From NCBI GenBank assembly GCA_965112735.1, contig OZ218951.1:992001-1056000 (forward strand): a DNA stretch of 64,000 bases, given 5' to 3'. Each line of letters opens with the position of its first letter. The stretch's first letter is position 1. The stretch comes from Phaeosaccion multiseriatum. Its lineage: Eukaryota; Protista; Ochrophyta, other classes. The translations under genes were made by a program, and so were the position numbers. Below the pieces are notes generated by a model, which did not search any database, was not told the DNA's origin, and saw only the letters and a program-made list of their open reading frames with translations. This document shows positions 1 to 46,903 of this stretch, one piece after another.

Positions 1-3000
1 GGCTCTGCCGTTTGGGTATGCGGACTACTCGCAGTGGCAGCGGTCGCGGCTGGACGGGGACAACGGCCTGGCCCTGGAGCAGCTGTTGGAGTACTGGCAG
101 GGGCAGCTAACGGGGGCGTCTACACTGACCCTGCCCCTGGACCGACCGCACGGTGCTTTCGGCCCGCATCTGACGGAGACTGTAAGTCAAGATGGGATTG
201 TGGGGGGGCGCGGCGGGAGTGTCGCTGTTGTTCTGCCGGCTTCGCTGATAGTGAAGCTGAGCAAGCTATGCTCGAGCAGCTCCGCCACGCTGTTTGTGGG
301 GCTCATGGGCGCGTTCCAAGTGCTGCTGGCTCGTGTGTGCGGAGCGGAGGATGTGGTGGTGGGCACTGCGCACTTCGGAAGGGACATGGCGCAAGGCTTG
401 GAAGGAGTGCTGGGATGCTTCGTCAACACCCTCGCGTTCCGTCTGGGCCTGGGAGGAAGCCCCAGCTTTCGGGAGGTGCTGCTTCGCGTACAGGGCGCGT
501 ATCTGGGTGCCATGAAGCATGCCGAGGCACCGTTCCATAAGGTGGTGGAGCGGGCCCAGCTGGGCACAAAGAGTGGTGGCAAGGCGCTACAAGCCTTCTT
601 TGTACTGCAGGAGGGAGATGCCAGCGCCGTGGAGGAGGAGGCCCAGCTGTCAGCTGGAGCACTCCACGAGATCATGACGGAGGAGGCTGGAGAGCGGCAG
701 GCCAATCAGTTTAGCAAGACTGACATCGAGCTAAGCCTTGTGCGCAGCACGGACAGTGCGTCGGACATGCACGGCAGCCTGTGCTACAATACGGCGGTGC
801 TCGACCAGGCCACAATGGAGACCCTGGCGCGGAGCTTCCTGGCGCTGCTGGAGAGTGCAGTGGGCAGGCCGGGCGAGAGCGTGTGGAAGCTGAGTCTCTT
901 GGCACACGAGGACCGTGTGAAGGTGGTGGAGACGCTGAGCGGCGCTGCACTGGTGGCGGAGGATGCCAATGGAGACGAGGAGGGAGGTGCAGAGGAAGCA
1001 TCGCCACCACCGCCCCTCCTGCACGCGGCTTTCGAAGAGATGGCCTCTCGCAGTCCGGAGCAGGAAGCCCTGCACGAGTATGAGACAGGTCGGGTCATGA
1101 GCTACGGGGAGCTGAATGGGCATGCGAATGCGGTGGCATGCATGCTGCAGGGGAGGGGCATGGGGCCGGAGTGCCTGGTGGGGGTGCTGATTGCTGGGGA
1201 CTGCGTGGAGGCGGTTGTGGCAGTGCTGGGCGTGCTCAAGGCCGGGGCGGCGTACGTGCCCCTGGATCCCGAGCATCCCGACGATAGGCTATCGATGATC
1301 GCACAAGATGCCGGGCTGAACGTCGTTCTCACAGCAGCAACTGGGGCGGACCATGTGGAACAAGGCCTCCCCACAGGCGGTAGGTCGGCTCGCTCCGTCG
1401 GAGGCGCGAGCTGTGTGGATGTGAGGACCATGATGCAGCTCGAGGGGGCTGCTACGACAGTCTCTGAGGTGGAGTGTAAGGCCGTCTATAACAATGTGGC
1501 GTATGTGATATACACGTCTGGAAGCACCGGGCGACCGAAGGGTGTGGTGGTCGAGCATAGAAACGCGGCCGGCTTCATGGCGACGATCTACGAAACGTTA
1601 CTGGGCACTATAGACCCTTCGTCACGGGTGCTACTGAGCAGTGCTTTGACTTTCGACATGTCGGTGGCATTGATCTTCGGGGCTCTGTCATGCGGGGCGA
1701 CGCTCTGCCTGGTACAAAGGCTCTCCATGTTGAGCGAGCTGCCAGAGGTTGTGCGCTCGCTTGGGGTATCGTTCTTGGGGTTCACTCCGTCACTACTGTC
1801 TTTGCTCCAACAGCCTCATGGTGGAGAAGTGGGTTTCCCGAGTCTTCGGTCCATCGCGCTTGGGGGAGAGGCCTTACGTCAAGAGCAGGTCGATTACTGG
1901 AAACACCGAGTGCGACTGGGCAATGCTTATGGACCCACAGAGACGGCGGTGGCAGTCACCTGGCACGAGTACACACCGTCTGCCGTGCCGAGCGCGTCCG
2001 TCATCGGCAAGCCTCAAGCCGGCGTGCAAGTGTATGTGGTGGACAAGCGTCTGCAGCTGGTGCCTCGGGGCGTGGATGGCGAGCTGTGCATTGGGGGGAG
2101 ACAGCTGGCGCGTGGGTACTTGAATCGCCCAGAGCTCACGTCGAAGGCCTTCATCCCCGCGCCCTTCTTGGCGGACCAGCGCAGAGTGTATCGTACGGTA
2201 AGTCGAAAAGGTTGCCCATGGGTGTGCGGCTTTGTGTAGTGTGTACATTTGGATTGCTTTTGGCAATCATGTCATGCGGTGAAAAGAAGAGAGCGCAGGG
2301 GGGGGGGGGATGATGGAAGTAGTTCTCTCTGCTACCCTGCGCACTGTTCTGATCTGACGCATCTCAAACTTAAAACCGTTCTGACAGGGCGACTTGGTGC
2401 GGCAGCTGGCAGACGGATCGCGGGTGTTTAGGGGTCGCCGAGACTCTCAAGTGAAGGTGCGCGGCCATCGCATTGAGCTGGGCGAGGTGGAGGCTGCGCT
2501 GCTCCATCAAGAGGGTGTGAGGAGCGCTGTGGCAGCCGTGGACAGAGAACGCGAGACGGTTGTGGCGGCTCTGACACCTTCTAGTGCCGAAGTTGATATG
2601 GTACTGCAAGGAGTGAGCAAGCTGCTACCGGCATACATGGTGCCGAGCACGGCTGTGGCCATGAATGCTCTACCAATGACGAGCAGCGGGAAGCGAGACG
2701 TGAAAGAGCTTCTCAGAGCCATTCGAGAGGCACATGACCATGGCCCTGGCAGGCAGCGGAGCCTAGGCGTCAGCGATGACGCACCTATGGACGACACCAC
2801 CCGTCAAGTGCTCGGCATTATGCGAGAGGCCATTGGGCGACCGGATCTGCGAGCCAGCGGCGACTTGTTCGCCGAGGGAGGCACTTCGCTTGACGCTGCA
2901 AGTGTCACAGCACGCATCCGCGCAGAGGTGCCAGGCTTCGAGGTGAGTGGGATGGAGGGCTGTCTTTCTGGTGTGGCCGGTAGTTCCAAATGGTTTGCTA

Positions 3001-6000
3001 ATATAGTTGTGGACCGTCGGATATCCTTACTCGTTGCTGTACTCAGGCGCTCCAGGTGGCAGAGATGTTCCAGACACCCACCGCGAGGGGTGTGTCTCGC
3101 TTATGTGCGAGCAGGGAGGACACGCTTCCTGGTATGATGATGATATCGCGAGTTGGCGACCATTGTGAGGCTCCAGCGTCGTACCAACAGGAGCACATGC
3201 TGCTGTCGGACCTGGCGCTGCGAGCGGGCGACCCAGACGGGAGGGCGCGATACAACGTGCCCATGCTTCTACCCGTGCCCAGCTCCGAATCGGAGAGAGA
3301 GCCCAGCGAGGTTGTGGACGGCTTGTCCCGTGCCCTGTGCGCCATGGTGGAGCGTCACGATGTTCTGCGATTGGCGCTAGGCTGGTCACCGGAGGGGACG
3401 CTGCAGCAGGTGCGGCTGCAGACCACAGCAGCGGAGGTTGTGGCGTCAGTGCTTCTGTCCGCCGAGGCGAACAGCATCGAAGAGGCCGAGAGCGTGCTAT
3501 TGGCAGAGGCGGGGCGCCTGTTTGACGTGGAGGAGGAAAGGCCACTCTGGCGCAGCACCATCGTCACCGTTGCACCGCCCCAGGAAGGTGAGAAGGAGCA
3601 CCCGCTGGGGCGGCAAGCGGTGCTGTGTGTCTTCCACCACTCCATCATGGATGGGTGGTCATCCAAGCTGTTCTCGCGCGAGCTGTTGGTCCTGTGGGGG
3701 GCTGTCGCGTCTGGCCGAGAGGCGACGAAGGCGCTAGCGGCTCTGCCGTTTGGGTATGCGGACTACTCCCTGTGGCAGCGGTCGCGACTGGACGGGGACA
3801 ACGGCCTGGCCCTGGAGCAGCTGTTGGAGTACTGGCAGGGGCAGCTAACGGGGGCGTCTACACTGACTCTGCCCCTGGACCGACCGCACGGTGCTTTCGG
3901 CCCGCATCTGACGGAGACTGTAGGTCAAGATGGGGTTGTGGGGGGGGGCGGCGGGAGTGTCGCAGTTGTTCTACCGGCTTCGCTGATAGTGAAGCTGAGC
4001 AACCTATGCTCGAGCAGCTCCGTCACGCTGTTTGTGGGGCTCATGGGCGTGTTCCAAGTGCTGCTGGCTCGTGTGTGCGGAGCGGAAGATGTGGTGGTGG
4101 GCACTGCGCACTTCGGAAGGGACATGGCGCAAGGCTTGGAGGGCGTGCTGGGATGCTTCGTCAACACCCTCGTGTTCCGTCTGGGCCTAGGAGGAAGCCC
4201 CAGCTTTCGGGAGGTGCTGCTTCGCGTACAAGTCGCGTATCTGGGTGCCATGAAGCATGCCGAGGCACCGTTCCACAAGGTGGTGGAGCGGGCCCAGCTG
4301 GGTAGAAAGAGTGGTGGCAAGGCGCTACAAGCCTTCTTTGTACTGCAGGAGGGAGATGCCAGCGCCGTGGAGGAGGAGGCCCTGCTGTCAGCTGGAGCAC
4401 TCCACAAGATCATGACGGAGGGTGCTGGAGAGCAGCAGGCCAATCAGTTTAGCAAGACTGACATCGAGCTAAGCCTTGTGCGCAGCACGGGCAGTGCGTC
4501 GGACATGCACGGCAGCCTGTGCTACAATACGGCGGTGCTCGACCAGGCCACAGTGGAGACCCTGGCGCGGAGCTTCCTGGCGCTGCTGGAGAGTGCAGTG
4601 GGCAGGCCGGGCGAGAGCGTGTGGAAGCTGAGTCTCTTGGCACACGAGGACCGTGTGAAGGTGGTGGAGACGTTGAGCGGCGCTGCACTGGTGGCGGAGG
4701 ATGCCAATGGAGACGAGGAGGGAGGTGCAGAGGAAGCATCGCCACCACCGCCCCTCCTGCACGCGGCTTTCGAAGAGGTGTCGTCTCGCAGTCCGGAGCA
4801 GGAAGCCCTGCACGAGTATGAGACGGGTCGGGTCATGAGCTACGGGGAGCTGAATGGGCATGCGAATGCGGTGGCATGCATGCTGCAGGGGAGAGGCGTA
4901 GGGCCGGAGTGCCTGGTGGGGGTGCTGATTGCTGGGGACTGCGTGGAGGCGATTGTGGCAGTGCTGGGCGTGCTCAAGGCCGGGGCGGCGTACGTGCCCC
5001 TGGATCCCGAGCATCCCGACGATAGGCTATCGATGATCGCACAAGACGCCGGGCTGAGCGTCGTTCTGACGACGGCAAAGGCAGCAGGCGAGTCTGAGGT
5101 GCTGGCATCCGCCGATGCCAGCTTAGCGCGGCGTGTCGGAGACGCGAGCTGTGTGGACGTGGTGGCTGTGATGCAAGTGGAGAGTACAGCGGAGCCTGTG
5201 TGCCACGCGGTGGGCGAGAGCATGGCGTACGTGATTTTCACGTCGGGAAGCACCGGGCTGCCGAAGGGCGTGATGATTGAGCACAGAAGCACGGCCTGCT
5301 TCATGGCGACTCTCTACGAAGAGGAACTGACGATAACGGCATCTTCTCGTGTGCTCCTGAGTGCTGCTCTGACATTTGATGCGTCTGTGGAGCTGCTGTT
5401 CGGGACGTTGTCGTGTGGGGCGACGCTGTGCTTGGCAGAGAAGGGCTCCATGCTGAACGACCTGCCGGAGCTGATACGGTCTTTGAAGGTGACGGACATT
5501 CATTGCACCCCTTCACTGCTGTCGCTGCTTCGGCCGCACGACATCGCCACAGGGGCGCAGGAGGCTACCCTACGGTCGATCGCTTTGGGTGGGGAACCGA
5601 TAAAGCAAGACCAAGTGGACATGTGGAGGCACCGTGTGCGCCTTGTGAATAGCTACGGCCCAACCGAGGCAACTATTGCCGTGATCGCACATGAGTACTC
5701 CTCTAGGGCTCTGTCGAGCGCGTCCGTCATCGGCAAGCCTCGAGCCGGCGTGCAAGTGTATGTGGTGGACAAGCGTCTGCAGCTGGTGCCTCAGGGCGTG
5801 GAGGGCGAGCTGTGCATTGGGGGGAGACAGCTGGCGCGTGGGTACTTGAATCGCCCAGAGCTCACGTCGAAGGCCTTCATCCCCGCGCCCTTCTTGGCGG
5901 ACCAGTGCAGAGTGTATCGTACGGTAAGTCGAAAAGGTTGCCCATGGGTGTGCGGCTTTGTGTAGTGTGTACATTTGGATTGCTTTTGGCAATCATGTCA

Positions 6001-9000
6001 TGCGGTGAAAAGAAGAGAGCGCAGGGGGGGGGGGATGGAGGTAGTTCTCTCTGTTGCCCTTTGCACTGCTCTGATCTGACGCGTGTCAAACTTAAAACCG
6101 TTCTGACAGGGTGACTTGGTGCGGCAGCTGGCAGACGGATCGCTGGTGTTTAGGGGTCGCCAAGACTCCCAAGTGAAGGTGCGCGGCTATCGCATTGAGC
6201 TGGGCGAGGTGGAGGCTGCGCTGCTCCATCAAGAGGGGGTGAGGAGCGCTGTGGCCGCCGTGGACAGAGACGGCGAGGCGGTTGTGGCGGCTCTGACACC
6301 TTCAAGTGCCGAAGTTGATATGGTGCTGCAAGGAGTGAGCAAGCTGCTACCGGCATACATGGTGCCGAGCACGGCTGTGGCCATGGATGCTCTACCAATG
6401 ACGAGCAGCGGCAAGCGAGACGTGAAAGGGCTTCTCAGAGCCATTCGAGAGGCACATGACCATGGCCATGGCAGGCAGCGGAGCCTAGGCGTCCGCGATG
6501 ACGCACCTATGGACGACACCACCCGTCAAGTGCTCGGCATTATGCGAGAGGCCATTGGGCGACCGGATCTGCGAGCCAGCGACGACTTGTTCGCCGAGGG
6601 AGGCACTTCGCTTGACGCTGCAAGTGTCACAGCACGCATCCGCGCAGAGGTGCCAGGCTTCGAGGTGAGTGGGATGGAGGGCTGTCTTTCTGGTGTGGCC
6701 GGTAGTTCCAAATGGTTTGCTAATATAGTTGTGGACCGTCGGATATCCTTACTCGTTGCTGTACTCAGGCGCTCCAGGTGGCAGAGATGTTCCAGACACC
6801 CACCGCGAGGGGTGTGTCTCGCTTATGTGCGAGCAGGGAGGACACGCTTCCTGGTATGATGATGATATCGCGAGTTGGCGACCATTGTGAGGCTCCAGCG
6901 TCGTACCAACAGGAGCACATGCTGCTGTCGGACCTGGCGCTGCGAGCGGGCGACCCAGACGGGAGGGCGCGATACAACGTGCCCATGCTTCTACCCGTGC
7001 CCAGCTCCGAATCGGAGAGAGAGCCCAGCGAGGTTGTGGACGGCTTGTCCCGTGCCCTGTGCGCCATGGTGGAGCGTCACGATGTTCTGCGATTGGCGCT
7101 AGGCTGGTCACCGGAGGGGACGCTGCAGCAGGTGCGGCTGCAGACCACAGCAGCGGAGGTTGTGGCGTCAGTGCTTCTGTCCGCCGAGGCGAACAGCATC
7201 GAAGAGGCCGAGAGCGTGCTATTGGCAGAGGCGGGGCGCCTGTTTGACGTGGAGGAGGAAAGGCCACTCTGGCGCAGCACCATCGTCACCGTTGCACCGC
7301 CCCAGGAAGGTGAGAAGGAGCACCCGCTGGGGCGGCAAGCGGTGCTGTGTGTCTTCCACCACTCCATCATGGATGGGTGGTCATCCAAGCTGTTCTCGCG
7401 CGAGCTGTTGGTCCTGTGGGGGGCTGTCGCGTCTGGCCGAGAGGCGACGAAGGCGCTAGCGGCTCTGCCGTTTGGGTATGCGGACTACTCCCTGTGGCAG
7501 CGGTCGCGACTGGACGGGGACAACGGCCTGGCCCTGGAGCAGCTGTTGGAGTACTGGCAGGGGCAGCTAACGGGGGCGTCTACACTGACCCTGCCCCTGG
7601 ACCGACCGCACGGTGCTTTCGGCCCGCATCTGACGGAGACTATAGGTCAAGATGGGATTGTGGGGGGGCGCGGCGGGAGTGTCGCTGTTGTTCTGCCGGC
7701 TTCGCTGATAGTGAAGCTGAGCAACCTATGCTCGGGCAGCTCCGCCACGTTGTTTGTGGGGCTCATGGGCGCGTTCCAAGTGCTGCTGGCTCGTGTGTGC
7801 GGAGCGGAGGATGTGGTGGTGGGCACTGCGCACTTCGGAAGAGACGTGGCGCAAGGCTTGGAGGGCGTGCTGGGATGCTTCGTCAACACCCTCGCGTTCC
7901 GTCTGGGCCTGGGAGGAAGCCCCAGCTTTCGGGAGGTGCTGCTTCGCGTACAAGTCGCGTATCTGGGTGCCATGAAGCATGCCGAGGCACCGTTCCACAA
8001 GGTGGTGGAGCGGGCCCAGCTGGGCAGAAAGAGTGGTGGCAAGGCGCTGCAGGCCTTCTTTTTACTGCAGGAGGGAAATGCCAGCGCCGTGGAGGAGGAG
8101 GCCCAGCTGTCAGCTGGAGCACTCCACAAGATCATGACGGAGGAGGCTGGAGAGCAGCAGGCCAATAATCTTAGCAAGACTGACATCGAGCTATGCCTTG
8201 TGCGCAGCACGGACAGTGCGTCGGACATGCACGGCAGCCTGTGCTACAATATGGCGGTGTTCGACCAGGCCACAGTGGAGACCCTGGCGCGGAGCTTCCT
8301 GGCGCTGCTGGAGAGTGCAGTGGGCAGGCCGGGCGAGAGCGTGTGGAAGCTGAGTCTCTTGGCACACGAGGACCATGTGAAGGTGGTGGAGACGTTGAGC
8401 GGCGCTGCACTGGTGGCGGGGGATGCCAATGGAGATGAGGAGGGAGGTGCAGAGGAAGCATCGCCACCACCGCCCCTCCTGCACGCGGCTTTCGAAGAGA
8501 TGGCCTCTCGTAGTCCGGAGCAGGAAGCCCTGCACGAGTATGAGACGGGTCGAGTCATGAGCTACGGGGAGCTGAATGGGCATGCGAATGCGGTGGCATG
8601 CATGCTGCAGGGGAGAGGCGTGGGGCCGGAGTGCCTGGTGGGGGTGCTGATTGCTGGGGACTGCGTGGAGGCGGTTGTGGCAGTGCTGGGCGTGCTCAAG
8701 GCCGGGGCGGCGTACGTGCCCCTGGATCCCGAGCATCCCGACGATAGGCTATCGATGATCGCACAAGACGCCGGGCTGAGTGTCGTTCTGACGACGGCAA
8801 AGGCAGTAGGCGAGTCTGAGGGGCTGGTAACCGCCGATGCCAGCTTAGCGCGGCGTGTCGGAGACGCGAGCTGTGTGGACGTGGTGGCTGTGATGCAAGT
8901 GGAGAGTACAGCGGAGCCTGTGTGCCACGCCGTGGGCGAGAACATGGCGTACGTGATCTACACATCCGGTAGTACCGGCCGGCCAAAGGGCGTGATGATT

Positions 9001-12000
9001 GAGCACAGAAGCACGGCCAGCTTCATGGCGACTCTCTACGAAGAGGAACTGACGATAACGGCATCTTCTCGTGTGCTCCTGAGTGCTGCTTTGACATTTG
9101 ATGTGTCTGTGGCGTCGCTGTTTGGGCCGTTGTCGTGTGGGGCGACGCTGTGCTTGGCAGAGAAGGGCTCCATGCTGAACGACCTGCCGGAGGTGATACG
9201 GTCTTTGAGGGTAACAGACATGTACTGCACCCCTTCACTGCTGTCGCTGCTTCGACCGGATGACATCACCAATGGAGCTAAGGAGGCCACCTTACGGTCC
9301 ATCGCATTGATTGGGGAGCCGATCAAGGAAGGCCAAGTGGACATGTGGAGGCGCAGTGTTCGCCTTGTCAATAGCTACGGCCCAACAGAGGCGACGGTTT
9401 CCGCTACCGCACATGAGTACAGTCCGGGTGCCCTGTCGAGTGGGTTCGTCATCGGCAAGCCTCGAGCCGGCGTGCAAGTGTATGTGGTGGACAAGCGTCT
9501 GCAGCTGGTGCCTCAGGGCGTGGAGGGCGAGCTGTGCATTGGGGGGAGACAGCTGGCGCGTGGGTACTTGAATCGCCCAGAGCTCACGTCGCAGGCCTTC
9601 ATCCCCGCGCCCTTCCTGACGGATCAGCGCAGAGTGTATCGTACGGTAAGTCGCAAAGGTGGCCCATGGGTGTGCGGCTTTGTGTGTGTGCGTGTGTTGT
9701 GTGTACATTTGGCTTGCTTTTGGCCTGTCATGCGGTGAAAAGAAGAGAGCGCAGGGGGGGGGGGATGGAGGTAGTTCTCTTTGCTGCCCTGTGCACTGTT
9801 CTGATATGACGCATCTCAAACTTAACACGTTCTGACAGGGTGACTTGGTGCGGCAGCTGGCAGACGGATCGCTGGTGTTTAGGGGTCGCCGAGACTCTCA
9901 AGTGAAGGTGCGCGGCCATCGCATTGAGCTGGGCGAGGTGGAGGCTGCGCTGCTCCATCAAGAAGGTGTGAGGAGCGCTGTGGCAGCCGTGGACATTGAG
10001 CGCGAGACGGTTGTGGCGGCTCTGACACCTTCTAGCGCCGAAGTCGAGATGGTGCTGCAAGGAGTGAGCAAGCTGCTACCGGCATACATGGTGCCGAGCA
10101 CGGCTGTGGCCATGGATGCTCTACCGATGACGAGCAGCGGCAAGCGAGACGTGACAGAGGTTCTCAGAGCCATTCGAGAGGCACATGACCATGGCCCTGG
10201 CAGGCAGCGGAGCCTAGGCGTCCGCGATGACGCACCTATGGACGACACCACCCGTCAAGTGCTCGGCATTATGCGAGAGGCCATTGGGCGACCGGATCTG
10301 CGAGCCAGCGGCGACTTGTTCGCCGAGGGAGGCACTTCGCTTGACGCTGCAAGTGTCACAGCACGCATCCGCGCAGAGGTGCCAGGCTTCGAGGTGAGTG
10401 GGATGGAGGGCTGTCTTTCTGGTGTGGCCGGTAGTTCCAAATGGTTTGCTAATATAGTTGTGGACCGTCGGATATCCTTACTCGTTGCTGTACTCAGGCG
10501 CTCCAGGTGGCAGAGATGTTCCAGACACCCACCGCGAGGGGTGTGTCTCGCTTATGTGCGAGCAGGGAGGACACGCTTCCTGGTATGATGATGATATCGC
10601 GAGTTGGCGACCATCGTGAGGCTCCAGCGTCGTACCAACAGGAGCACATGCTGCTGTCGGACCTGGCGCTGCGAGCGGGCGACCCAGACGGGAGGGCGCG
10701 ATACAACGTGCCCATGCTGCTACCCGTGTCCAGCTCCGAATCGGAGAGAGAGCCCAGCGAGGTTGTGGACGGCTTGTCCCGTGCCCTGTGTGCCATGGTG
10801 GAGCGTCACGATGTTCTGCGATTGGCGCTAGGCTGGTCACCGGAGGGGACGCTGCAGCCGGTGCGGCTGCAGACCACAGCAGCGGAGGTTGTGGCGTCAG
10901 TGCTCCTGTCCGCCGAGGCGAACAGCATCAAAGAGGCCGAGAGCGTGCTATTGGCAGAGGCGGGGCGCCTGTTTGACTTGGAGGAGGAAAGGCCACTCTG
11001 GCGCAGCACCATCGTCACCGTTGCACCGCCCCAGGATGATGAGAAGGAGCACCCGCTGGGGCGGCAAGCGGTGCTGTGTGTCTTCCACCACTCCATCATG
11101 GATGGGTGGTCATCCAAGCTGTTCTCGCGCGAGCTGTTGGTCATGTGGGGGGCTGTCGTGTCTGGCCGAGAGGCGACGAAGGCGCTAGCGGCTCTGCCGT
11201 TTGGGTATGCGGACTACTCGCGGTGGCAACGGTCGCGACTGGACGGGGACAACGGCCTGGCCCTGGAGCAGCTGTTGGAGTACTGGCAGGGGCAGCTAAC
11301 GGGGGCGTCTTCACTGACCCTGCCCCTGGACCGACCGCACGGTGCTTTCGGCCCGCATCTGACGGAGACTGTAAGTCAAGATGGGATTGTGGGGGGGGGC
11401 GGCGGGAGTGTTGCTGTTGTTCTGCCGGCTTCGCTGATAGTGAAGCTGAGCAACCTATGCTCGAGCAGCTCCGTCACGCTGTTTGTGGGGCTCATGGGCG
11501 CGTTCCAAGTGCTGCTGGCTCGTGTGTGCGGAGCGGAGGATGTGGTGGTGGGCACTGCGCACTTCGGAAGAGACGTGGCGCAAGGCTTGGAGGGCGTGCT
11601 GGGATGCTTCGTCAACACCCTCGCGTTCCGTCTGGGCCTGGGAGGAAGCCCCAGCTTTCGGGAGGTGCTGCTTCGCGTACAAGTCGCGTATCTGGGTGCC
11701 ATGAAGCATGCCGAGGCACCGTTCCACAAGGTGGTGGAGCGGGCCCAGCTGGGCAGAAAGAGTGGTGGTAAGGCGCTACAAGCCTTCTTTGTACTGCAGG
11801 AGGGAAATGCCAGCGCCGTGGAGGAGGAGGCCCAGCTGTCAGCTGGAGCACTCCACAAGATCATGACGGAGGAGGCTGGAGAGCAGCAGGCCAATAATCT
11901 TAGCAAGACTGACATCCAGCTAAGCCTTGTGCGCCGCAGCACGGACAGTGCGTCGGACATGCACGGCAGCCTGTGCTACAATACGGCGGTGCTCGACCAG

Positions 12001-15000
12001 CCCACAGTGGAGACCCTGGCGCGGAGCTTCCTGGCGCTGCTGGAGAGTGCAGTGGGCAGGCCGGGCGAGAGCGTGTGGAAGCTGAGTCTCTTGGCACACG
12101 AGGACCGTGTGAAGGTGGTGGAGACGCTGAGCGGCGCTGCACTGGTGGCGGGGGATGCCAATGGAGATGAGGAGGGAGGTGCAGAGGAAGCATCGCCACC
12201 ACCGCCCCTCCTGCACGCGGCTTTCGAAGAGGTGGCCTCTTGTAGTCCGGAGCAGGAAGCCCTGCACGAGTATGAGACAGGTCGATTGATGAGCTACGGG
12301 GAGCTGAATGGGCATGCGAATGCGGTGGCGTGCATGCTGCAGGGGAGAGGCGTGGGGCCGGAGTGCCTGGTGGGGGTGCTGATTGCTGGGGACTGCGTGG
12401 AGGCGGTTGTGGCAGAGCTGGGCGTGCTCAAGGCCGGGGCGGCGTACGTGCCCCTGGATCCCGAGCATCCCGACGATAGGCTGTCGATGATCGCACAAGA
12501 CGCCGGGCTGAGCGTCGTTCTCACAGCAGCATCTGGGGCGGACCATGTGGAACAAGGCCTCCCCACAGGAGGTAGGTCGGCTCGCACCGTTGGAGGCGCG
12601 AGCTGCGTGGATGTCAGGACCATGATGCAGCTCGAGGGGGCTGCTACGACAGTCTCTGAGGTGGAGTGTAAGGCCGCCGATATCAATGTGGCGTATGTGA
12701 TATACACATCTGGAAGCACCGGGCGACCCAAGGGTGTGGTGGTCGAGCATAGAAACACGGCCAGCTTCATGGCGACTCTCTACGAGGCGGAATTGGGCAC
12801 CATAGACCCTTCGTCACGGGTTCTGCTGAGCAGCGCTTTGACTTTCGATATGTCAGTGGCGTTGATCTTCGGGGCTCTGTCATGCGGGGCGACGCTGTGC
12901 CTGGTGCAAAAGCTCTCCATGTTGAGCGAGCTGCCAGAGGTTGTGCGCTCGCTAGGGGTATCGTTCTTGGTGTGCACTCCGTCACTTCTGTCTTTGCTCC
13001 CACAGCCTCATGGTGGAGAAGCGGCTTTCCCGAGTCTTCGGTCGATCGCGCTTGGGGGAGAGGCCTTACATCAAGAGCAGGTCGACTACTGGAAGCACCG
13101 AGTGCGACTGGGCAATGCTTATGGACCCACAGAGACGGCGATGGCAGTCACCTGGCACGAGCACACACCTGGGGCCCTGTCGAGTGGGTTCGTCCTCGGC
13201 AAGCCTCGAGCCGGCGTGCAAGTGTATGTGGTGGACAAGCGTCTGCAGCTGGTGCCTCGGGGCGTGGATGGCGAGCTGTGCATTGGGGGGAGACAGCTGG
13301 CGCGTGGGTACTTGAATCGCCCAGAGCTCACGTCGAAGGCCTTCATCCCCGCGCCCTTCTTGACGGACCAGCGCAGGGTGTATCGTACGGTAAGTGGAAA
13401 CGGTTGCCCATGGGTGTGGCTTTGTGTGTGTGCGTGTGTTGTGTGTACATTTGGCTTGCTTTTGGCCTGTCATGCGGTGAAAAGAAGAGAGCGCAGGGGG
13501 GGGGGGATGGAGGTAGTTCTCTTTGCTGCCCTGTGCACTGTTCTGATATGACGCATCTCAAACTTAACACGTTCTGACAGGGTGACTTGGTGCGGCAGCT
13601 GGCAGACGGATCGCTGGTGTTTAGGGGTCGCCGAGACTCTCAAGTGAAGGTGCGCGGCCATCGCATTGAGCTGGGCGAGGTGGAGGCTGCGCTGCTCCAT
13701 CAAGAAGGTGTGAGGAGCGCTGTGGCAGCCGTGGACATTGAGCGCGAGACGGTTGTGGCGGCTCTGACACCTTCTAGCGCCGAAGTCGAGATGGTGCTGC
13801 AAGGAGTGAGCAAGCTGCTACCGGCATACATGGTGCCGAGCACGGCTGTGGCCATGGATGCTCTACCGATGACGAGCAGCGGCAAGCGAGACGTGACAGA
13901 GGTTCTCAGAGCCATTCGAGAGGCACATGACCATGGCCCTGGCAGGCAGCGGAGCCTAGGCGTCCGCGATGACGCACCTATGGACGACACCACCCGTCAA
14001 GTGCTCGGCATTATGCGAGAGGCCATTGGGCGACCGGATCTGCGAGCCAGCGGCGACTTGTTCGCCGAGGGAGGCACTTCGCTTGACGCTGCAAGTGTCA
14101 CAGCACGCATCCGCGCAGAGGTGCCAGGCTTCGAGGTGAGTGGGATGGAGGGCTGTCTTTCTGGTGTGGCCGGTAGTTCCAAATGGTTTGCTAATATAGT
14201 TGTGGACCGTCGGATATCCTTACTCGTTGCTGTACTCAGGCGCTCCAGGTGGCAGAGATGTTCCAGACACCCACCGCGAGGGGTGTGTCTCGCTTATGTG
14301 CGAGCAGGGAGGACACGCTTCCTGGTATGATGATGATATCGCGAGTTGGCGACCATCGTGAGGCTCCAGCGTCGTACCAACAGGAGCACATGCTGCTGTC
14401 GGACCTGGCGCTGCGAGCGGGCGACCCAGACGGGAGGGCGCGATACAACGTGCCCATGCTTCTACCCGTGTCCAGCTCCGAATCGGAGAGAGAGCCCAGC
14501 GAGGTTGTGGACGGCTTGTCCCGTGCCCTGTGTGCCATGGTGGAGCGTCACGATGTTCTGCGATTGGCGCTAGGCTGGTCACCGGAGGGGACGCTGCAGC
14601 AGGTGCGGCTGCAGACCACAGTAGCGGAGGTTGTGGCGTCAGTGCTTCTGTCCGCCGAGGCGAACAGCATCGAAGAGGCCGAGAGCGTGCTATTGGCAGA
14701 GGCGGGGCGCCTGTTTGACGTGGAGGAGGAAAGGCCACTCTGGCGCAGCACCATCGTCACCGTTGCACCGCCCCAGGATGATGAGAAGGAGTACCCGCTG
14801 GGGCGGCAAGCGGTGCTGTGCGTCTTCCATCACTCCATCATGGATGGGTGGTCATCCAAGCTGTTCTCGCGCGAGCTGTTGGTCCTGTGGGGGGCTGTCG
14901 CGTCTGGCCGAGAGGCGACGAAGGCGCTAGCGGCTCTGCCGTTTGGGTATGCGGACTACTCCCTGTGGCAGCGGTCGCGACTGGACGGGGACAACGGCCT

Positions 15001-17580
15001 GGCCCTGGAGCAGCTGTTGGAGTACTGGCAGGGGCAGCTAACGGGGGCGTCTACACTGACCCTGCCCCTGGACCGACCGCACGGTGCTTTCGGCCCGCAT
15101 CTGACGGAGACTATAGGTCAAGATGGGATTGTGGGGGGGCGCGGCGGGAGTGTCGCTGTTGTTCTGCCGGCTTCGCTGATAGTGAAGCTGAGCAACCTAT
15201 GCTCGAGCAGCTCCGCCACGTTGTTTGTGGGGCTCATGGGCGCGTTCCAAGTGCTGCTGGCTCGTGTGTGCGGAGCGGAGGATGTGGTGGTGGGCACTGC
15301 GCACTTCGGAAGAGACGTGGCGCAAGGCTTGGAGGGCGTGCTGGGATGCTTCGTCAACACCCTCGCGTTCCGTCTGGGCCTGGGGGGAAACCCCAGCTTT
15401 CGGGAGGTGCTTCTTCGCGTGCAAGTCGCGTATCTGGGTGCCATGAAGCATGCCGAGGCACCGTTCCACAAGGTGGTGGAGCGGGCCCAGCTGGGCAGAA
15501 AGAGTGGTGGCAAGGCGCTACAAGCCTTCTTTGTACTGCAGGAGGGAAATGCCAGCGCCGTGGAGGAGGAGGCCCAGCTGTCAGCTGGAGCACTCCACAA
15601 GATCATGACGGAGGAGGCTGGAGAGCAGCAGGCCAATAATCTTAGCAAGACTGACATCGAGCTATGCCTTGTGCGCAGCACGGACAGTGCGTCGGACATG
15701 CACGGCAGCCTGTGCTACAATATGGCGGTGTTCGACCAGGCCACAGTGGAGACCCTGGCGCGGAGCTTCCTGGCGCTGCTGGAGAGTGCAGTGGGCAGGC
15801 CGGGCGAGAGCGTGTGGAAGCTGGGTCTCTCGGCACACGAGGACCGTGTGAAGGTGGTGGAGACGCTGAGCGGCGCTGCACTGGTGGCGGAGGATGCCAA
15901 TGGAGATGAGGAGGGAGGTGCAGAGGAAGCATCGCCACCACCGCCCCTCCTGCACGCGGCTTTCGAAGAGATGGCCTCTCGTAGTCCGGAGCAGGAAGCC
16001 CTGCACGAGTATGAAACAGGTCGGGTGATGAGCTACGGGGAGCTCAATGGGCATGCGAATACGGTGGCGTGCATGCTGCAGGGGAGGGGCGTGCGGCCGG
16101 AGTGCCTGGTGGGGGTGCTGATTGCTGGGGACTGCGTGGAGGCGGTTGTGGCAGTGCTGGGCGTGCTCAAGGCCGGGGCGGCGTACGTGCCCCTGGATCC
16201 CGAGCATCCCGATGACAGGCTGTCGATGATCGCACAAGACGCAGGGCTGAGCGTCGTTCTGACGACGGCAAAGGCAGCAGGCGAGTCTGAGGGGCTGGAA
16301 TCCGCCGATGCCAGCTTAGCGCGGCGTGTCGGAGACGTGAGCTGTGTGGACGTGGTGGCTGTGATGCAAGTGGAGAGTACCGCGGAGCCTGTGTGCCACG
16401 CGGTGGGCGAGAGCATGGCGTACGTGATCTACACATCCGGTAGCACAGGCCGGCCAAAGGGCGTGATGATTGAGCACAGAAGCACGGCCTGCTTCATGGC
16501 GACTCTCTACGAATTCGAACTGACAGTGACAGCATCTTCGCGCGTGCTTCTGAGCAGCGCTTTGACTTTCGATGTGTCTATGGCGTTGCTGTTCGGGACG
16601 TTGTCGTGTGGGGCGACGCTGTGTTTGGCAGAGAAGGGCTCCCTGCTGAACGACCTGCCGGAGCTGATACGGTATTTCGGGGTGACGGAAGCTGAATTCA
16701 CCCCCTCACTGTTGTCACTGCTGAAACCGGGAGACATTATGGAGGAGGGCACCTTACGGTCCATCGCTTTGGGTGGGGAGACGGTGAAGCAGGATCAAGT
16801 GGACATGTGGAGGCACCATGTGCGCCTCGTTAATAGCTACGGTCCAACAGAGGCGACGGTTTCCGCGACCGCACATGAGTACTCCTCTGGGGCCCTGTCG
16901 AGCGCATCTGTCATCGGCAAGCCTCTGACCGGCGTGCAAGTGTATGTGGTGGACAAGCGTCTGCAGCTGGTGCCTCAGGGCGTGGAGGGCGAGCTGTGCA
17001 TTGGGGGGAGACAGCTGGCGCGTGGGTACTTGAACCGCCCAGAGCTCACGTCGAAGGCCTTCATCCCCGCGCCCTTCTTGACGGACCAGCGCAGAGTGTA
17101 TCGTACGGTAAGTCGAAAAGGTTGCCCATGGGTGTGCGGCTTTTTGTGTGTGCGTGTATTGTGTGTACATTTGGCTTGCTTTTGGCATGTCATGCAGTGA
17201 CAAGCAGAGCGCAGGGGGGGGTGGAGGTAGTTTTCTCTGCTGCCTATGGTGTAGTGTTCTGATCTGACGCGTCTCAAACATAACACGTTCGGACAGGGTG
17301 ACTTGGTGCGGCAGCTGGCAGACGGATCGCTGGTGTTTAGCGGTCGCCGAGACTCTCAAGTGAAGGTGCGCGGCTATCGCATTGAGCTGGGCGAGGTGGA
17401 GGCTGCGCTGCTCCATCAACGGGGGGTGGTGAGCGCTGTGGCAGCGGTGGACAGAGAGCGCGAGATGATTGTGGCGGCTCTGACACCTTCTAGCGCCGAA
17501 GTTGAGATGGTGCTGCAAGGAGTGAGCAGACTGCTACCGTCATACATGGTGCCGAGCACGGCTGTGGCCGTGGATGCTGT
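1..17580 (+). repeat. Tandem array of about 3.73-kb NRPS module units, introns included (units start at 3047, 6769, 10498, 14240; the first is partial)
   Basis: Near-identical sequence recurs at offsets of 3722, 3729 and 3742 bp. The 104-bp intron reads identically in four copies. Confidence 0.97.
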
Positions 17581-20500
17581 GCTGTGGGTGCCGTGGCCGT
17601 GGATGCTCTACCGATGACGAGCAGTGGAAAGAGAGACGTGAAAGAGGTGCTGAGGATGATCAAGGCGGAAGCGAAGGGAAACAAAACCGCTGTAAAGGCG
17701 TCCGACGGCGACGAGGCGTTAGGCGACACTGCCCGCCAAGTGCTGGGCATCCTGAGGCAGGCCACGGAGCAGCCTCACTTGCAGGCCAATGACGACTTGT
17801 TCGCAGAGGGAGGAACATCGTTGAGTGCGGCTCAGGCGGTTTCGCGTATCCGGGCAGAGGTTCCCGGCTTCGAGGTGAGTGACTTTGAGCACAAAGCTTT
17901 CGTTGTGTTGTGTCTCGCCCTTGTTGCTGACCCTGTTGTGTCTGTGTGACTCCTGCAGGCTCTGACAGTAATGCAGATCTTCCAGAACCGAACCGCTGTG
18001 GCACTTTCAGTGCTTGGTGCCGCGGAGGAGGGCGGAGGTAGAGGAGACAGCGGGCAAGAGTCGTCGGCAGCAAGCGAAGCCCGACTGAAGGACGAGGAGC
18101 GCGATTTCGAGTCAGCCGGTGAAGAAGGGGAAGCGATGAAAGCGCACCGGAGGCCCAGCACTGGCAACCAAGTGGTGCTGCAGGTTCTGAGTTGGCTGCT
18201 CGTTGTTGCTGTGCTCAGCGGCGGGTTTTCTCCCAGCTTCGTTGGCGTGTACTTGTTACGTAGAGCAGGGCGCGGCAATACGACGATTCTTTCTTGGCTA
18301 CCACTCCTCGTCGTCGTGTCAGTAAGTTGGGTCCTTGCCCTGATTGCAGTGGTGAAGTGGGCTGTGCTTGGCCGCATGCGACCGGGGCGATGGTCCGTGA
18401 GGAGCTCATACTACTGGCGGTGGTATGCTGTGCAGAATGTGCTGAAACTGGCCGCACGGCTGATTTCTGTTCTCCGTGGTACCTTCGCCTTGCGGGTGTG
18501 GAACCGCCTGCTGGGGGCACGAATCAGTGGAAGCGCGCGCTTAGAGAGCTGGCTGCTGCACGAGCATGACTTGATCGAGATTGGAGAAGGGGCCGTGATC
18601 GAGTACGGAGCCGTCATTCGCCCGTCTGTCATTACTCGAAATGGCATGCTCCATGTCCATCGCGTGAGGATCGGGAAGGGAGCAAAGGTGGGCATACTGT
18701 CCAACGTGTGTCCGTCTCCCTGGGAGGGGGGGCAGACGCAGGAGGGGGAGGAGGGCCTGGATGAGGAGCTAAAGGACTTGGTCATCGGCGAGGGGATGGA
18801 GCTCGGTCCGTACGCGTCGCTCGGCCATTCGCTACTTTCTGGCCCGCTGGCAGAGGTCGAACGCGAGCAGGGGCTGCGGCGGGCAGGAAAGGAGCTTTTT
18901 GCCTTGGCCCTGCTTTCAGTGACCAACTTGGGGTCGTACCTGCTGCCCCTCTGGATACTTGTGCTTGCCGGTGGGGGTGATGTGGACGACGCGGGGGAGA
19001 GTGTCCCCATCTTCGCTCGTACATTGGCGTTCCCCGTGCTGCTGCTGATCGGAAGCATGCTGTACATGGTGGCAGTGCTATCGATACAGCGTGTATTCTT
19101 GCTGCTCGGCCCCAGCGCCACCACACGGCTGTCACTCGGAGTTCTTCAGGAGAGTCCTCTCTTCAAGGTTGGCTTCCTTCTTGTGGCAAAATGTGGGCTC
19201 AACCGTGTTTTTGCTTCCGCCATGGGCGCCAAGCTGGAGCGGGGGTGCGCACTTTCTACCCTTCCTATCACTACGATATGGGAGAAGCTCAGGATAGGGG
19301 AAAACTCCCAGCTCGCGGGCTCTGTGCACCTTTTCGCTGATGCGGGTGCCCGTGGAGACGAGGATACGCAAAGCATCACAATCGGCCGCTTCAGCATTGT
19401 TGCGAACGAAGCTCTTCTCCTAGGCGGAGCTTGCATTGGGGACGGAAGCACGGTCGCAGATCGCACCGTTGTGAGTGGAGACGACGACGTACCGTGCAAC
19501 TCTTCTGTAGTGGGCGCCCCTCGGCCGTTTGTATTGCCGAACCCAATGAGTGCTGCTGCTGAGAAGGATGGCGTCGATGCAGCAGCCAGTCTTCCTGTTC
19601 CGTCGAGGATGCAGAATGCGCTGCGTGGGCTTGCGACTGTGGTGCTGCTCCTCGGCGCATGGTGTCCGGGGGTGTTGATCAGCGCGTCGGTAGCTGACCT
19701 GCTGTTGCGCAATGGCCATGTGCATGGGGCTGCCGCCTTCTGTCCCTTCGTCCTTCCAGAAGTGGTGGCGAGGGATACACTGAGCGAGAGCCATACTGGA
19801 GTGTTCTTTCTTGTGTTGGGGAGCTTCGTCTTTCAAGTTCTCATGGCCTTGGCGGGCGCTTGCTCAGCCATTCATTTCCATCGAGTTCTGGGCACATCCT
19901 TGCATGCCAAAGAGGGGCAGCCTCCCATAGCGCTCGATTCGCCTTCGCTGGATATATACCACTTGGGCAGCATGGCCCCTGGCTTCATTGAGGATCTCTG
20001 TATCAAGTACTTCGCGGGCGGGCCGGTGTACGCGGCGTGGCTGCGGCTGCTGGGGGCAAGTGTTGGCAAGGACACATCTTTATGGCTCAGGCCTACTGAT
20101 GCGCATCTTCTCGTCATTGGAGACGAAGCGGTGGTGTTGCAAGACTCCACAATCTTCGCGCACACCATCGAAGGCACGGGAGGGTTCGTCTTCAAGACTG
20201 TGCAAGTCGAGGAGAACGCGTGGCTCGGAGCAAGGGCTCACTTGCAGCCTGGATGCCGCGTTGAAGCAGGAGCTAACGTTGGTGACTTGAGCATGGCCAT
20301 GAGAGGTGAAAGTGTCACCAATTCAAAGCGTGGAGACGTGGCGTGGGTGGGCATACCGCTGAGAAAGCACGTCTTGTCCTCCCGAGCGCTCGCTGCGCCG
20401 CGTCACGGAACGGAGCTGGACAGCGGCAGAGCCCCGGCAGAAGAGCGAACCCTTCGCAACAAGGGCAGAGGGGGGTCGAGGAGACATGTGCTTCGAGAGA

Positions 20501-20595
20501 GAAGCAGCCCTCGCCGAGGAGGAGCGTCTTTCCGGCGGAAGAGTGTGCATCAGCCTGGGGAGACCAAGAATGCGGATAGATTCGATGTAGTTTGA
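1..20595 (+). CDS. Giant multimodular NRPS, 5'-truncated by the window edge: [C]-A-T-(C-A-T)x4-Pls/PosA-like terminal membrane domain, >6,300 aa if the frameshift at 17,579-17,607 is ignored. Exons: <1-2197, 2388-2942, 3047-5923, 6110-6664, 6769-9645, 9839-10393, 10498-13389, 13581-14135, 14240-17107, 17297-17874, 17959-20595
   Basis: C-domain motifs: [41 protein letters not shown]-domain motifs: [22 protein letters not shown], FDxSV, Nx[23 protein letters not shown]|[38 protein letters not shown]-domain motif: [10 protein letters not shown]. All ten GT-AG introns are phase 0 and rejoin split motifs, and every internal exon is a multiple of 3 except 17297-17874. Confidence 0.95.
17959..20595 (+). 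CDS. Terminal exon of the NRPS: end of the last T domain plus a Pls/PosA-like (NRPS_term_dom, TIGR02353-like) domain with three units of TM helices and hexapeptide/left-handed beta-helix repeats
   Basis: [23 protein letters not shown]...[19 protein letters not shown]...[11 protein letters not shown]. The second and third units carry AMGAKLERG...LRIGENSQL and [12 protein letters not shown]...[10 protein letters not shown]. Paired hydrophobic segments precede each unit. No TE (GxSxG) or reductase domain was seen. Confidence 0.85.
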   Translation, partial: ALTVMQIFQNRTAVALSVLGAAEEGGGRGDSGQESSAASEARLKDEERDFESAGEEGEAMKAHRRPSTGNQVVLQVLSWLLVVAVLSGGFSPSFVGVYLLRRAGRGNTTILSWLPLLVVVSVSWVLALIAVVKWAVLGRMRPGRWSVRSSYYWRWYAVQNVLKLAARLISVLRGTFALRVWNRLLGARISGSARLESWLLHEHDLIEIGEGAVIEYGAVIRPSVITRNGMLHVHRVRIGKGAKVGILSNVCPSPWEGGQTQEGEEGLDEELKDLVIGEGMELGPYASLGHSLLSGPLAEVEREQGLRRAGKELFALALLSVTNLGSYLLPLWILVLAGGGDVDDAGESVPIFARTLAFPVLLLIGSMLYMVAVLSIQRVFLLLGPSATTRLSLGVLQESPLFKVGFLLVAKCGLNRVFASAMGAKLERGCALSTLPITTIWEKLRIGENSQLAGSVHLFADAGARGDEDTQSITIGRFSIVANEALLLGGACIGDGSTVADRTVVSGDDDVPCNSSVVGAPRPFVLPNPMSAAAEKDGVDAAASLPVPSRMQNALRGLATVVLLLGAWCPGVLISASVADLLLRNGHVHGAAAFCPFVLPEVVARDTLSESHTGVFFLVLGSFVFQVLMALAGACSAIHFHRVLGTSLHAKEGQPPIALDSPSLDIYHLGSMAPGFIEDLCIKYFAGGPVYAAWLRLLGASVGKDTSLWLRPTDAHLLVIGDEAVVLQDSTIFAHTIEGTGGFVFKTVQVEENAWLGARAHLQPGCRVEAGANVGDLSMAMRGESVTNSKRGDVAWVGIPLRKHVLSSRALAAPRHGTELDSGRAPAEERTLRNKGRGGSRRHVLRERSSPRRGGASFRRKSVHQPGETKNADRFDVV

Positions 20596-35312: not shown

Positions 35313-36035
35313 TTAGGACTTGTCCTTGTGCAGCGGCGACAAGTCCTCTTCCGCCTTGCCATTGCCGAGCCTCTCCACCGCCCGTCGCAGTGTGCTAATT
35401 TTCTCTGCCCTATCCCCCTTGAACACGTACGAGCCTGCCACGATCAAATTCGCCCCGGCCTCTGCTGCCTGATCGATGCTATCGGCATTGAGCCCCCCGT
35501 CTACTTCGATGGCGAGGCCTGGGAACTTTTCCCGGATAGCCTTGACCTTGCTCATTTGGTCTTGCATGAAGCTCTGTCCCCCAAAGCCGGGTTCTACTGT
35601 CATAATGAGGGCGAGGTCGAGCTGGTCGCAGTACTGCAACAGGCCCTCCACAGGGGTGGCTGGCTTGATGGCCATGCCCACCTTCATGCCACTGCCCTTG
35701 ATGGCATTGATCACCTCACTCGGCTCGCAGTCCGACTCCAAATGGAAGGTCAGTCTATCCACACCTGCTTTGGCCATATCCTCCACCCACTGCTGCGGTT
35801 TGGTGACCATGAGGTGAGCATCCAGCACTGCTTTGGTGTGTTGTCTCAGCCCCTTGATGACAGGCGCGCCGAAGGAGATGTTTGGCACAAAGTGTCCGTC
35901 CATCACATCAAGGTGAATGTAGTCAGCGCCAGAGGCCTCCACGTGCGCCACTTCCTCCGCAAGGCGGGAGAGGTCGGACGCCAGCACGGAGGGGCCGATT
36001 TCAGGCGGGCAGCTGTGGGGCGATGTGGACGCCAT
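35313..36035 (-). CDS. RPE: Ribulose-phosphate 3-epimerase, intronless (an upstream in-frame ATG at 36,197 is also possible)
   Basis: IGPSVLASD, YIHLDVMDGHFVPNISFG, LDAHLMV, TFHLE, IKPATP, LIMTVEPGFGGQSFM, IEVDGG, AGANLIVAGS. Confidence 0.97.
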   Translation of the reverse strand: MASTSPHSCPPEIGPSVLASDLSRLAEEVAHVEASGADYIHLDVMDGHFVPNISFGAPVIKGLRQHTKAVLDAHLMVTKPQQWVEDMAKAGVDRLTFHLESDCEPSEVINAIKGSGMKVGMAIKPATPVEGLLQYCDQLDLALIMTVEPGFGGQSFMQDQMSKVKAIREKFPGLAIEVDGGLNADSIDQAAEAGANLIVAGSYVFKGDRAEKISTLRRAVERLGNGKAEEDLSPLHKDKS

Positions 36036-36858
36036 GTTCTCCCTTGTCTTCGACGCTGGGAAGTGAGTGTACGACGGTGAGGATGCGGGGCTGGAAGAGG
36101 AGCAGCAGCTAGCTGCAGCAGCTGCAGCAGCACCGGCAAGGCTGTGAGAGGCAGGAGGGCACGTAATTTTTTTTTGTTGATTATTGGCAGGAGGCATGAA
36201 TGTCTAGTCCCAACCCATTTTCTACCATTTACGCAAGGGGAGACAGGCAAGAACTTACCAGCAGCAGCTAACAAAGGTCTTGAGGAGCCGAATATCCAGG
36301 CTTACTTCTTACTCTTTGCTGTGAAGGGAGAATGAGGCGCGATAAGGTCGTCGGGAAGTCGGGGTGCGGGGAAGGGGGAGCGTAATGCCGCAACGGAAAC
36401 CTCTGGATGGCACCTGATGGCCCAAACTAGTTTGGCGTCCATTTTATTTTTTTAAAGTGCCCCTCTCTTGCCTCTTGTCTGTTCCCTACCGCACCCTTAC
36501 TCAGGATGGGTCGTGCATGACCCTCCTCTCTCTCTGTCCTCGTCGTGGTAGGCCTTTGCATTCCATCGGGACGGACACGACATTATCTAAAGTCTCCCTC
36601 TCGCGACAACTGCCAAGTCGCCTTGACGGTGACATTGCGCGACATTGCCGCTCCCTCACATAGCAACATGTGCTGAGTGTCCAGAACGGGCCCTAATCCG
36701 TTTATACTCCTCGCGCTGGGAAGGAAGGAGGCTTGGGCCCGGAGGAAGAATAAGCGCGAGATTGGACCGATTCACCGAGGACTCTGCGCTTCACGCTGTA
36801 ACGTAGCCTTCAGCGTCTCCCGCCGGCTTGCGTTCTTTCTCCCACCTCGGGGGATACC

Positions 36859-41356: not shown

Positions 41357-41390
<34 letters not shown>

Positions 41391-46870: not shown

Positions 46871-46903
<33 letters not shown>

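Follow-up and report, generated by a model that had tools for sequence, protein, structure and literature searches.

How does a series of almost identical enzyme modules come to carry a different substrate code from copy to copy? This question is raised by a 64,000-nt stretch of contig OZ218951.1 of Phaeosaccion multiseriatum (assembly GCA_965112735.1, forward strand, positions 992,001 to 1,056,000), hereafter the window. Positions 1-20595 of its plus strand are the 3' part of one large intron-bearing gene for a nonribosomal peptide synthetase (NRPS). In an initial annotation, made from the letters alone, the modules were taken to have diverged after duplication under diversifying selection on the substrate pocket, and the gene was described as an assembly line caught evolving a new product. 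On the one hand, our analysis showed that replacements do accumulate at the pocket. On the other hand, the variable part of the modules is far older than the sequence that surrounds it and is shared with other loci of the genome. Considering these results, we regard it as probable that the gene is a homogenised scaffold around old cassettes of the adenylation (A) domain core, and that the pocket has been retuned within the lineages of these cassettes.

Divergence confined to a block of the adenylation domain

When 30 kb of upstream DNA was added, the gene contained seven modules, each with a condensation (C), an A and a thiolation (T) domain. N1 and N2 lie upstream of the window, and M1-M5, the third to seventh modules, lie inside it. 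The five modules of the initial annotation are all present in the window, but the gene has seven. Each module has two phase-0 introns at constant positions. Intron 1 (about 190 nt, GTAAGT...CTGACAG) splits motif A7 between YRT and GD, and intron 2 (104 nt) lies inside the T domain between GFE and AL. Exon limits were set from the conserved splice sites, single exons were used as queries in all searches, and the two exon types were analysed apart.

The differences between modules had been reported to pile up between motifs A2 and A6, and two-rate change-point fits, from which we took the block edges, confined the divergence to about 230 codons in this region. The block runs from about 20 codons past A2 to 20-30 codons before A6, and contains motifs A3-A5 together with nine of the ten specificity residues. 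Among N2 and M1-M5, nucleotide identity is 96-98% from the second half of T through C, A1 and A2, whatever the lineage of the block, and 97-100% from A6 to A7. Within the block, identity between cassette lineages is only 63-89%, and blocks of the same lineage are closer (98.4% for N2-M5 and 92% for M1-M4). Lineages I and II, the two deepest, differ at 36-38% of bases within the block and at 2-3% elsewhere. This confinement is far beyond chance. The left breakpoints are nested, at alignment columns 722-725, 777-785 (at A3), 814 and 870, and the right breakpoints fall at columns 944-957.

The remainder of each module has been kept uniform to different degrees. The C domains, T domains and even the introns had been described as almost identical among modules. 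This description is correct for the C domains and for intron 2, which is 100% identical in M1-M4, but it does not extend to intron 1, whose copies are 74-97% identical (M1-M2 94%, M3-M4 97%) and carry a poly-G run of about 6-12 G and a (TG)n stretch that vary in length by module. The exon for A8-A10 and the first half of T is 94-100% identical among N1-M4, and that of M5 is 80% identical to the others. Two perfect tracts recur exactly one module apart, positions 2861-3867 at 6583-7589 (1,007 nt) and positions 9676-10718 at 13418-14460 (1,043 nt). They extend over 821 and 822 nt up to the module boundary and 186 and 221 nt beyond it, reaching from the T domain through intron 2 into the beginning of the C domain that follows. 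Accordingly, perfect tracts of about 1 kb adjoin blocks that are 36-38% divergent, and identical neutral tracts beside divergent segments are the pattern known from concerted evolution. At third codon positions, the scaffold of N2 and M1-M5 has a GC content (GC3) of 0.75-0.76, whereas the cassettes have one of 0.66-0.72. This difference fits GC-biased gene conversion but does not prove it.

Assembly is difficult for repeats of 3.7 kb that are 96-98% identical, and collapsed or chimeric repeats could mimic the identity of the scaffold; a 29-nt insertion in M5, described below, is possibly itself an assembly error. However, each module is set apart from the others by a private set of scattered differences and by private variants of intron 1, and the same pattern is found at nine loci on three contigs of the 22-contig assembly. 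We consider that an assembly artefact is a most improbable source of the mosaic.

Age and distribution of the cassettes

At least 24 A domains of this NRPS family are present at the nine loci of the 67-Mb assembly, the one assembly on which the genomic comparison rests. The other 17 modules were retrieved for comparison with N1, N2 and M1-M5, and the two intron positions are identical in all 17. By their cassettes, the modules fall into lineage II (N1, M1, M4, C2b_1, C2b_4 and C8_1-3), lineage Ia (N2, M5 and C2_0.53b), lineage Ib (M2 and C2b_5) and lineage Ic (M3 and ten others). Several codes recur between loci, namely DVAEAGSVS (three times), DVAYAISVS (twice) and DMTMAGGMV (three times).

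The age of the block was read from synonymous divergence. In sliding estimates of synonymous (dS) and nonsynonymous (dN) divergence among the six elongation modules N2 and M1-M5, the flanks had a mean pairwise dS of 0-0.1 and the block one of 0.4-1.0, a difference of 10-20 times, and the dN/dS of the block was 0.1-0.47. Cassettes of lineages I and II were separated by a dS of 1.1-1.7, those of Ia and of Ib or Ic by about 0.3, and those of Ib and Ic by about 0.2; within a lineage dS was 0.01-0.19, comparisons between loci included. Scaffold dS stayed at 0.01-0.1 across the full set of elongation modules, irrespective of locus and cassette.

These values bear directly on the claim of divergence after module duplication, in which the modules would have arisen by duplication in place and point mutations under positive selection would then have driven the entire A2-A6 region apart. 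The differences are indeed limited to the region that bears specificity, and the pocket codons are enriched for replacements. However, selection after duplication would give equal dS in block and flanks; the observed values are unequal, and therefore the block is not fresh divergence. The block dN/dS also stays below 0.5. In addition, the same cassettes are found at other loci, N2 and M5 share one cassette within the gene, and the last module is frameshifted. We therefore consider in-place duplication with selection very unlikely as the origin of the block, and the claim of divergence after duplication is not upheld.

The phylogenies gave a similar picture. The cassette tree has two deep clades, with branches of 0.33 and 0.28, and the window modules are dispersed in it among modules of other loci. 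The nearest cassettes are C2b_1 and C2b_4 for M1, C2b_5 for M2, C2_0.26 for M3, and N2 with C2_0.53b for M5, and each window cassette is nearer to a relative elsewhere than to neighbouring cassettes of other lineages. In the approximately unbiased (AU) test on the cassette alignment, placing N2 and M1-M5 in a single clade costs 842 log-likelihood units (p-AU 1e-4). The scaffold tree, on the other hand, is a shallow star sorted by position in the gene (first versus elongation modules) and not by cassette type. Divergence confined to the Acore (columns 722-957) between native flanks at 96-100% identity, incongruent trees and several breakpoints are the features by which an exchange of A cores is recognised, and all of them are present in this family.

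From N1 to M5, the cassettes of the gene read II-Ia-II-Ib-Ic-II-Ia. A paralogous gene of five modules lies at C2:2641400-2660150, with II-Ic-Ic-II-Ib as the order of its cassettes. The last of these and the M2 cassette are 96% identical, but the paralog has Asp in place of His at position 278.

We also considered that one cassette lineage, for example lineage II, had been gained from a bacterium by horizontal transfer. Eukaryotic NRPS genes often derive from bacteria, and the nearest relatives outside the genome were bacterial in our searches. A word-index protein search with the M2 T/C/A exon and its A-domain part returned bacterial NRPSs only, at 29-43% identity, under limits of length window and word sharing that giant algal gene models would escape. 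When 185,579 bacterial and archaeal genomes were scanned with the M1 A domain, full-length matches reached at most 37% identity, and on this ground a bacterial donor for lineage II was rejected. In the cassette, amino-acid identity is 59-62% between lineages I and II but only 38-45% between either lineage and the best outside sequences, and the cassette GC3 is near that of the host gene. An outside donor of the cassettes is unlikely, and horizontal transfer of a single lineage from a bacterium has hardly any probability in our estimation.

Replacement at the substrate pocket

The specificity codes were re-extracted with the motifs FDxS, xCTPS, ALGGE and NxYGPTE as anchors, and the anchoring of M2 was confirmed in HMMER alignments to A domains of the PDB. 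The codes were DVAWAGSVSK in N1, DVAEAGSVSK in N2, DMAGAGAVAK in M1, DAEHAGSIAK in M2, DVAYAISVSK in M3, DMAVAGAMAK in M4 and DVAEAGSVS in M5, where the tenth position, a lysine, is out of frame. In M1, the nine pocket codons start at positions 1655, 1658, 1667, 1778, 1856, 1862, 1925, 1949 and 1952. The five ten-residue codes given in the initial annotation were recovered exactly. Its statement that position 278 differs in every window module (G, H, Y, V and E) was also reproduced, but N2 upstream repeats the Glu of M5, and the N2 and M5 codes are the same. Asp235, which it described as kept, is present in every module and in 24 of the 24 family members. Lys517 is found in all members read in frame, with M5 and C2_0.46 as exceptions. 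Asp235 and Lys517, at the two ends of the code, mark A domains that activate alpha-amino acids.

Within-lineage changes were counted by parsimony on the cassette tree, and the nine Stachelhaus codons were compared with the other 241 codons. In lineage I, the ratio of replacement to synonymous changes was 19:3 at the pocket and 123:140 elsewhere (Fisher p 0.00025). In lineage II, it was 12:3 at the pocket and 67:70 elsewhere (Fisher p 0.02). Per site, the pocket took 4-5 times as many replacements as the rest of the cassette. Position 278, with eight changes, is the most changeable column of the entire family, with Trp, Gly, Val or Met in lineage II and Glu, His, Asp, Tyr or Cys in lineage I. 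Single pairs showed the same excess: the nine pocket sites hold 5 of 26 replacements between M4 and N1 (p 0.001), 5 of 23 between M1 and C8_2 (p 0.0006), and 6 of 33 between M2 and M3 (p 0.0004). The excess of replacement at the pocket is real.

The dN/dS ratio (omega) at the pocket was 1.24 in lineage II and 1.98 in lineage I, against 0.33 and 0.30 elsewhere in the cassette. Purifying selection acts on the rest of the cassette, and certain codes have been conserved from locus to locus, which makes positive selection the most likely, although unproven, reason for the replacements at the pocket. The claim of diversifying selection on the pocket is accordingly supported in part, by the excess of replacements, but not by a significant omega above 1.

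In terms of substrates, the sequences offer leads. The initial annotation could match the codes to no known substrate, and this is still the case: a full-text literature search gave no occurrence of the window's codes, and in that search no window code reached at least 8/10 identity to a published code. Among lysine, ornithine and arginine codes, the full-text search retrieved the ornithine code alone (DVGEIGSIDK, PMC3992020), which gave the best verified match at 6/10. The M5/N2 code shares with it D235, V236, E278, G301, S322 and K517, and has Val for Ile at position 330. An identity of 6/10 is far under the need of a code-based call, and we take it as a lead for a basic substrate, with no assignment. 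M2 has Glu239 together with His278, and its close paralog C2b_5 has Asp278. The acidic pockets of M5/N2, M2 and C2b_5 suggest basic or polar substrates, again as leads. In lineage II, the pockets are small and hydrophobic, which suggests that position 278, as Trp, Val or Gly, may act as a size gate.

The last module carries a partial tandem duplication of 29 nt that shifts the reading frame, and the A10 lysine, the carrier serine and the terminal domain all lie downstream of the shift. Beyond the insertion, the sequence is clean in its own frame, with DNA for SSGKRD at position 17620. Five intact terminal-module paralogs lack the insertion and are otherwise up to 98% identical. A search by eye for a short intron that would excise the insertion found no GT...AG of suitable length. 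We take the insertion for a disabling mutation of very recent date or for an error of the assembly. The frameshift counts further against the picture of an assembly line caught evolving a new product.

The mosaic could also be real with pocket changes that are neutral, arising in promiscuous enzymes or decaying family members in which selection has no part. An omega of 1.2-2.0 is statistically compatible with 1, and the gene has a frameshift. However, the remainder of the cassette is constrained (omega 0.30-0.33), the frame is open in every one of the 24 long A-domain exons and in 23 of the 24 A8-A10/T exons that follow them, and some codes are identical between loci, as listed above. Accordingly, we think neutrality of the pocket improbable, although less so than the other alternatives.

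Several points weigh against our interpretation. The pocket omega does not differ significantly from 1 (binomial p 0.19 on combined counts, from nine codons only), and the pocket may therefore simply be under relaxed constraint. In the parsimony counts, one tree was assumed for the cassette despite nested conversion within it. AU tests on the scaffold alignment were non-significant (p 0.12 and 0.14), and a lineage II clade was not rejected there (p 0.12), because the scaffold tree is too shallow and the alignment carries little signal. The different history of the scaffold is therefore drawn from the more than tenfold contrast in dS and the identical introns, as the AU test is weak there. Transfer may have gone in either direction, with the scaffold converted around fixed cores or the cores pasted into scaffolds. 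Finally, judged from its reading frame, the gene may be inactive through the frameshifted last module.

With these points included, we still favour the homogenised scaffold with old cassettes. The scaffold would comprise the C domain, the T domain and the two introns, together with the A domain on either side of the cassette, namely its beginning to just past A2 and the part that starts just before A6 and continues through A10. It would be kept uniform by recurrent gene conversion or unequal crossing-over. The cassettes probably arose within the family, in a few much older lineages. They would persist as blocks because cores at 63-89% identity are too divergent to convert one another, and recombination at nested breakpoints would set them into different scaffolds. 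In this case, the five codes of the window would mostly reflect which pre-existing cassette occupies which module. The replacements within lineages, chiefly at position 278, would fit a repeated retuning of substrate choice.

Layout of the gene and relation to known systems

Open frames of about 960 and about 185 codons alternate along the gene with a period of about 3.73 kb, and a Pfam profile search placed Condensation, AMP-binding, AMP-binding_C and PP-binding domains on the alternating frames (Table 1). Every module scored 247-258 bits against PF00501, and the A domain of M2 scored 322.9 bits against TIGR01733, above the cut-off of 317.4, as for NRPS adenylation domains of the ANL superfamily. 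Core motifs A3 (TSGSTGxPKG), A4 (FDxS), A5 (NxYGPTE), A6 (GELxIxG), A7 (YRTGD), A8 and A10 (PxxxxGK) are all present in N1, N2 and M1-M4. The DNA of M5 also encodes every one of them, with A10 out of frame. In a pattern check, C3, A3, A5 and A6 were intact in seven of seven modules, and A7, A8 and A10 are readable in the exon translations. The C domain of N1 is of a different, first-module type, and the carrier motif is DGATSL in N2 and EGGTSL in the remaining modules. The terminal frame matched Pfam Hexapep (8.4e-12) and NCBIfam TIGR02353 (E 8.7e-41, under the curated cut-off), and a PDB sequence search with it gave no solved-structure match.

Table 1. Features of the NRPS gene, in window coordinates (negative values lie upstream of the window)
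Feature	Position	Strand	Remarks
N1	about -8200..-4527		upstream C-A-T module
N2	-4412..-796		upstream C-A-T module
M1 T (second half)/C/A1-A7 exon	1..2197	+	starts 691 nt before the window; Pfam Condensation, AMP-binding
M1 A-core cassette	1328..2020	+	lineage II, DMAGAGAVA
M1 intron 1	2198..2387	+	phase 0, GTAAGT...CTGACAG
M1 A8-A10/first half of T exon	2388..2942	+	Lys517 codon 2691
M1 intron 2	2943..3046	+	104 nt
M2 T/C/A1-A7 exon	3047..5923	+	
M2 A-core cassette	5066..5746	+	lineage Ib, DAEHAGSIA
M2 intron 1	5924..6109	+	
M2 A8-A10/T exon	6110..6664	+	Lys517 codon 6413
Intron 2 copy after M2 A8-A10/T exon	6665..6768	+	
M3 T/C/A1-A7 exon	6769..9645	+	
M3 A-core cassette	8788..9468	+	lineage Ic, DVAYAISVS
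M3 intron 1	9646..9838	+	
M3 A8-A10/T exon	9839..10393	+	Lys517 codon 10142
Intron 2 copy after M3 A8-A10/T exon	10394..10497	+	
M4 T/C/A1-A7 exon	10498..13389	+	
M4 A-core cassette	12520..13212	+	lineage II, DMAVAGAMA
M4 intron 1	13390..13580	+	
M4 A8-A10/T exon	13581..14135	+	Lys517 codon 13884
Intron 2 copy after M4 A8-A10/T exon	14136..14239	+	
M5 (last module) T/C/A1-A7 exon	14240..17107	+	
M5 A-core cassette	16259..16930	+	lineage Ia, DVAEAGSVS
M5 A8-A10/T exon, terminal-module type	17297..17874	+	578 nt, against 549 nt in five intact paralogs
Partial tandem duplication, 29 nt	17564..17592	+	frame shift ahead of the A10 lysine
Pls/PosA-type terminal domain	17971..20595	+	open frame after the last T-domain intron; hexapeptide repeats

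Outside the NRPS gene, the window holds a single-exon gene for ribulose-phosphate 3-epimerase at 35313-36197 on the minus strand, with an N-terminal extension of 66 residues. Its best matches, at 62-69% identity, are from brown algae, Chrysoparadoxa, raphidophytes and oomycetes, in line with a host among the ochrophyte stramenopiles. Three long open frames of 671-925 codons, at 40984-43761 (minus), 46257-48272 (plus) and 58545-60641 (minus), gave no Pfam family above threshold.

Recombination of A-core cassettes with retuning of the pocket is a known kind of NRPS evolution, and the eukaryotic member is new. A close likeness is to the kahalalide NRPS family of Candidatus Endobryopsis kahalalidifaciens (Li et al. 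2024, PMC11428043), in which many NRPS pathways recombine intensively within one genome. There, a highly variable 'Acore' from A3 to just before A6 clusters by substrate and not by pathway, and a few mutations between close cores appear to switch the substrate. However, that family belongs to a bacterial symbiont and has intron-less genes with known products, whereas the algal family is that of a eukaryote, has two introns per module and, in the NRPS studied here, ends in a Pls-type domain. The algal unit may also begin earlier, just past A2, and stops 20-30 codons short of A6. In the A-core swaps of cyanobacteria and other bacteria (Baunach et al. 2021, PMC8097286), part of the Acore is replaced and the C-A linker, Asub and the Asub-T interface are kept, with diverse breakpoints within the Acore as in the algal family. 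Those cases concern orthologous clusters across strains or species, whereas the algal case concerns paralogous modules of one nuclear genome whose scaffolds are homogenised genome-wide. Among algae, type I polyketide synthases have grown by duplication of modules, with close modules within an enzyme (Shelest et al. 2015, PMC4661987), and the algal NRPS is alike in this respect. That study used a ketosynthase phylogeny and described no specificity cassettes; it found algal NRPSs to be rare, in 7 of 32 species, the largest having three C domains.

Our results carry a caution for the reading of cloned repeats: a patch of differences at a functional site need not mean fresh selection, and synonymous divergence should be considered first. 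In terms of engineering, the family offers at least 24 naturally tolerated combinations of cassette and scaffold with mapped boundaries. Near-isogenic cassettes that differ almost only at the pocket, such as those with Trp, Gly or Val at position 278 in lineage II, or with His and Asp in M2 and C2b_5, provide tests of the residues that set specificity, in what amounts to a natural experiment. For the family itself, Acore-cassette recombination, so far described mainly in bacteria, also occurs in a nuclear, intron-bearing algal family. Tentatively, and with somewhat more doubt than belief, we propose that a small library of cassettes has been dealt by conversion among at least nine intron-bearing loci, and that position 278 and its pocket neighbours have been retuned under selection. 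If this is true, the family would be a nuclear combinatorial system for diversifying lipopeptides, a eukaryotic counterpart of the kahalalide NRPS family with field-tested cassette boundaries.

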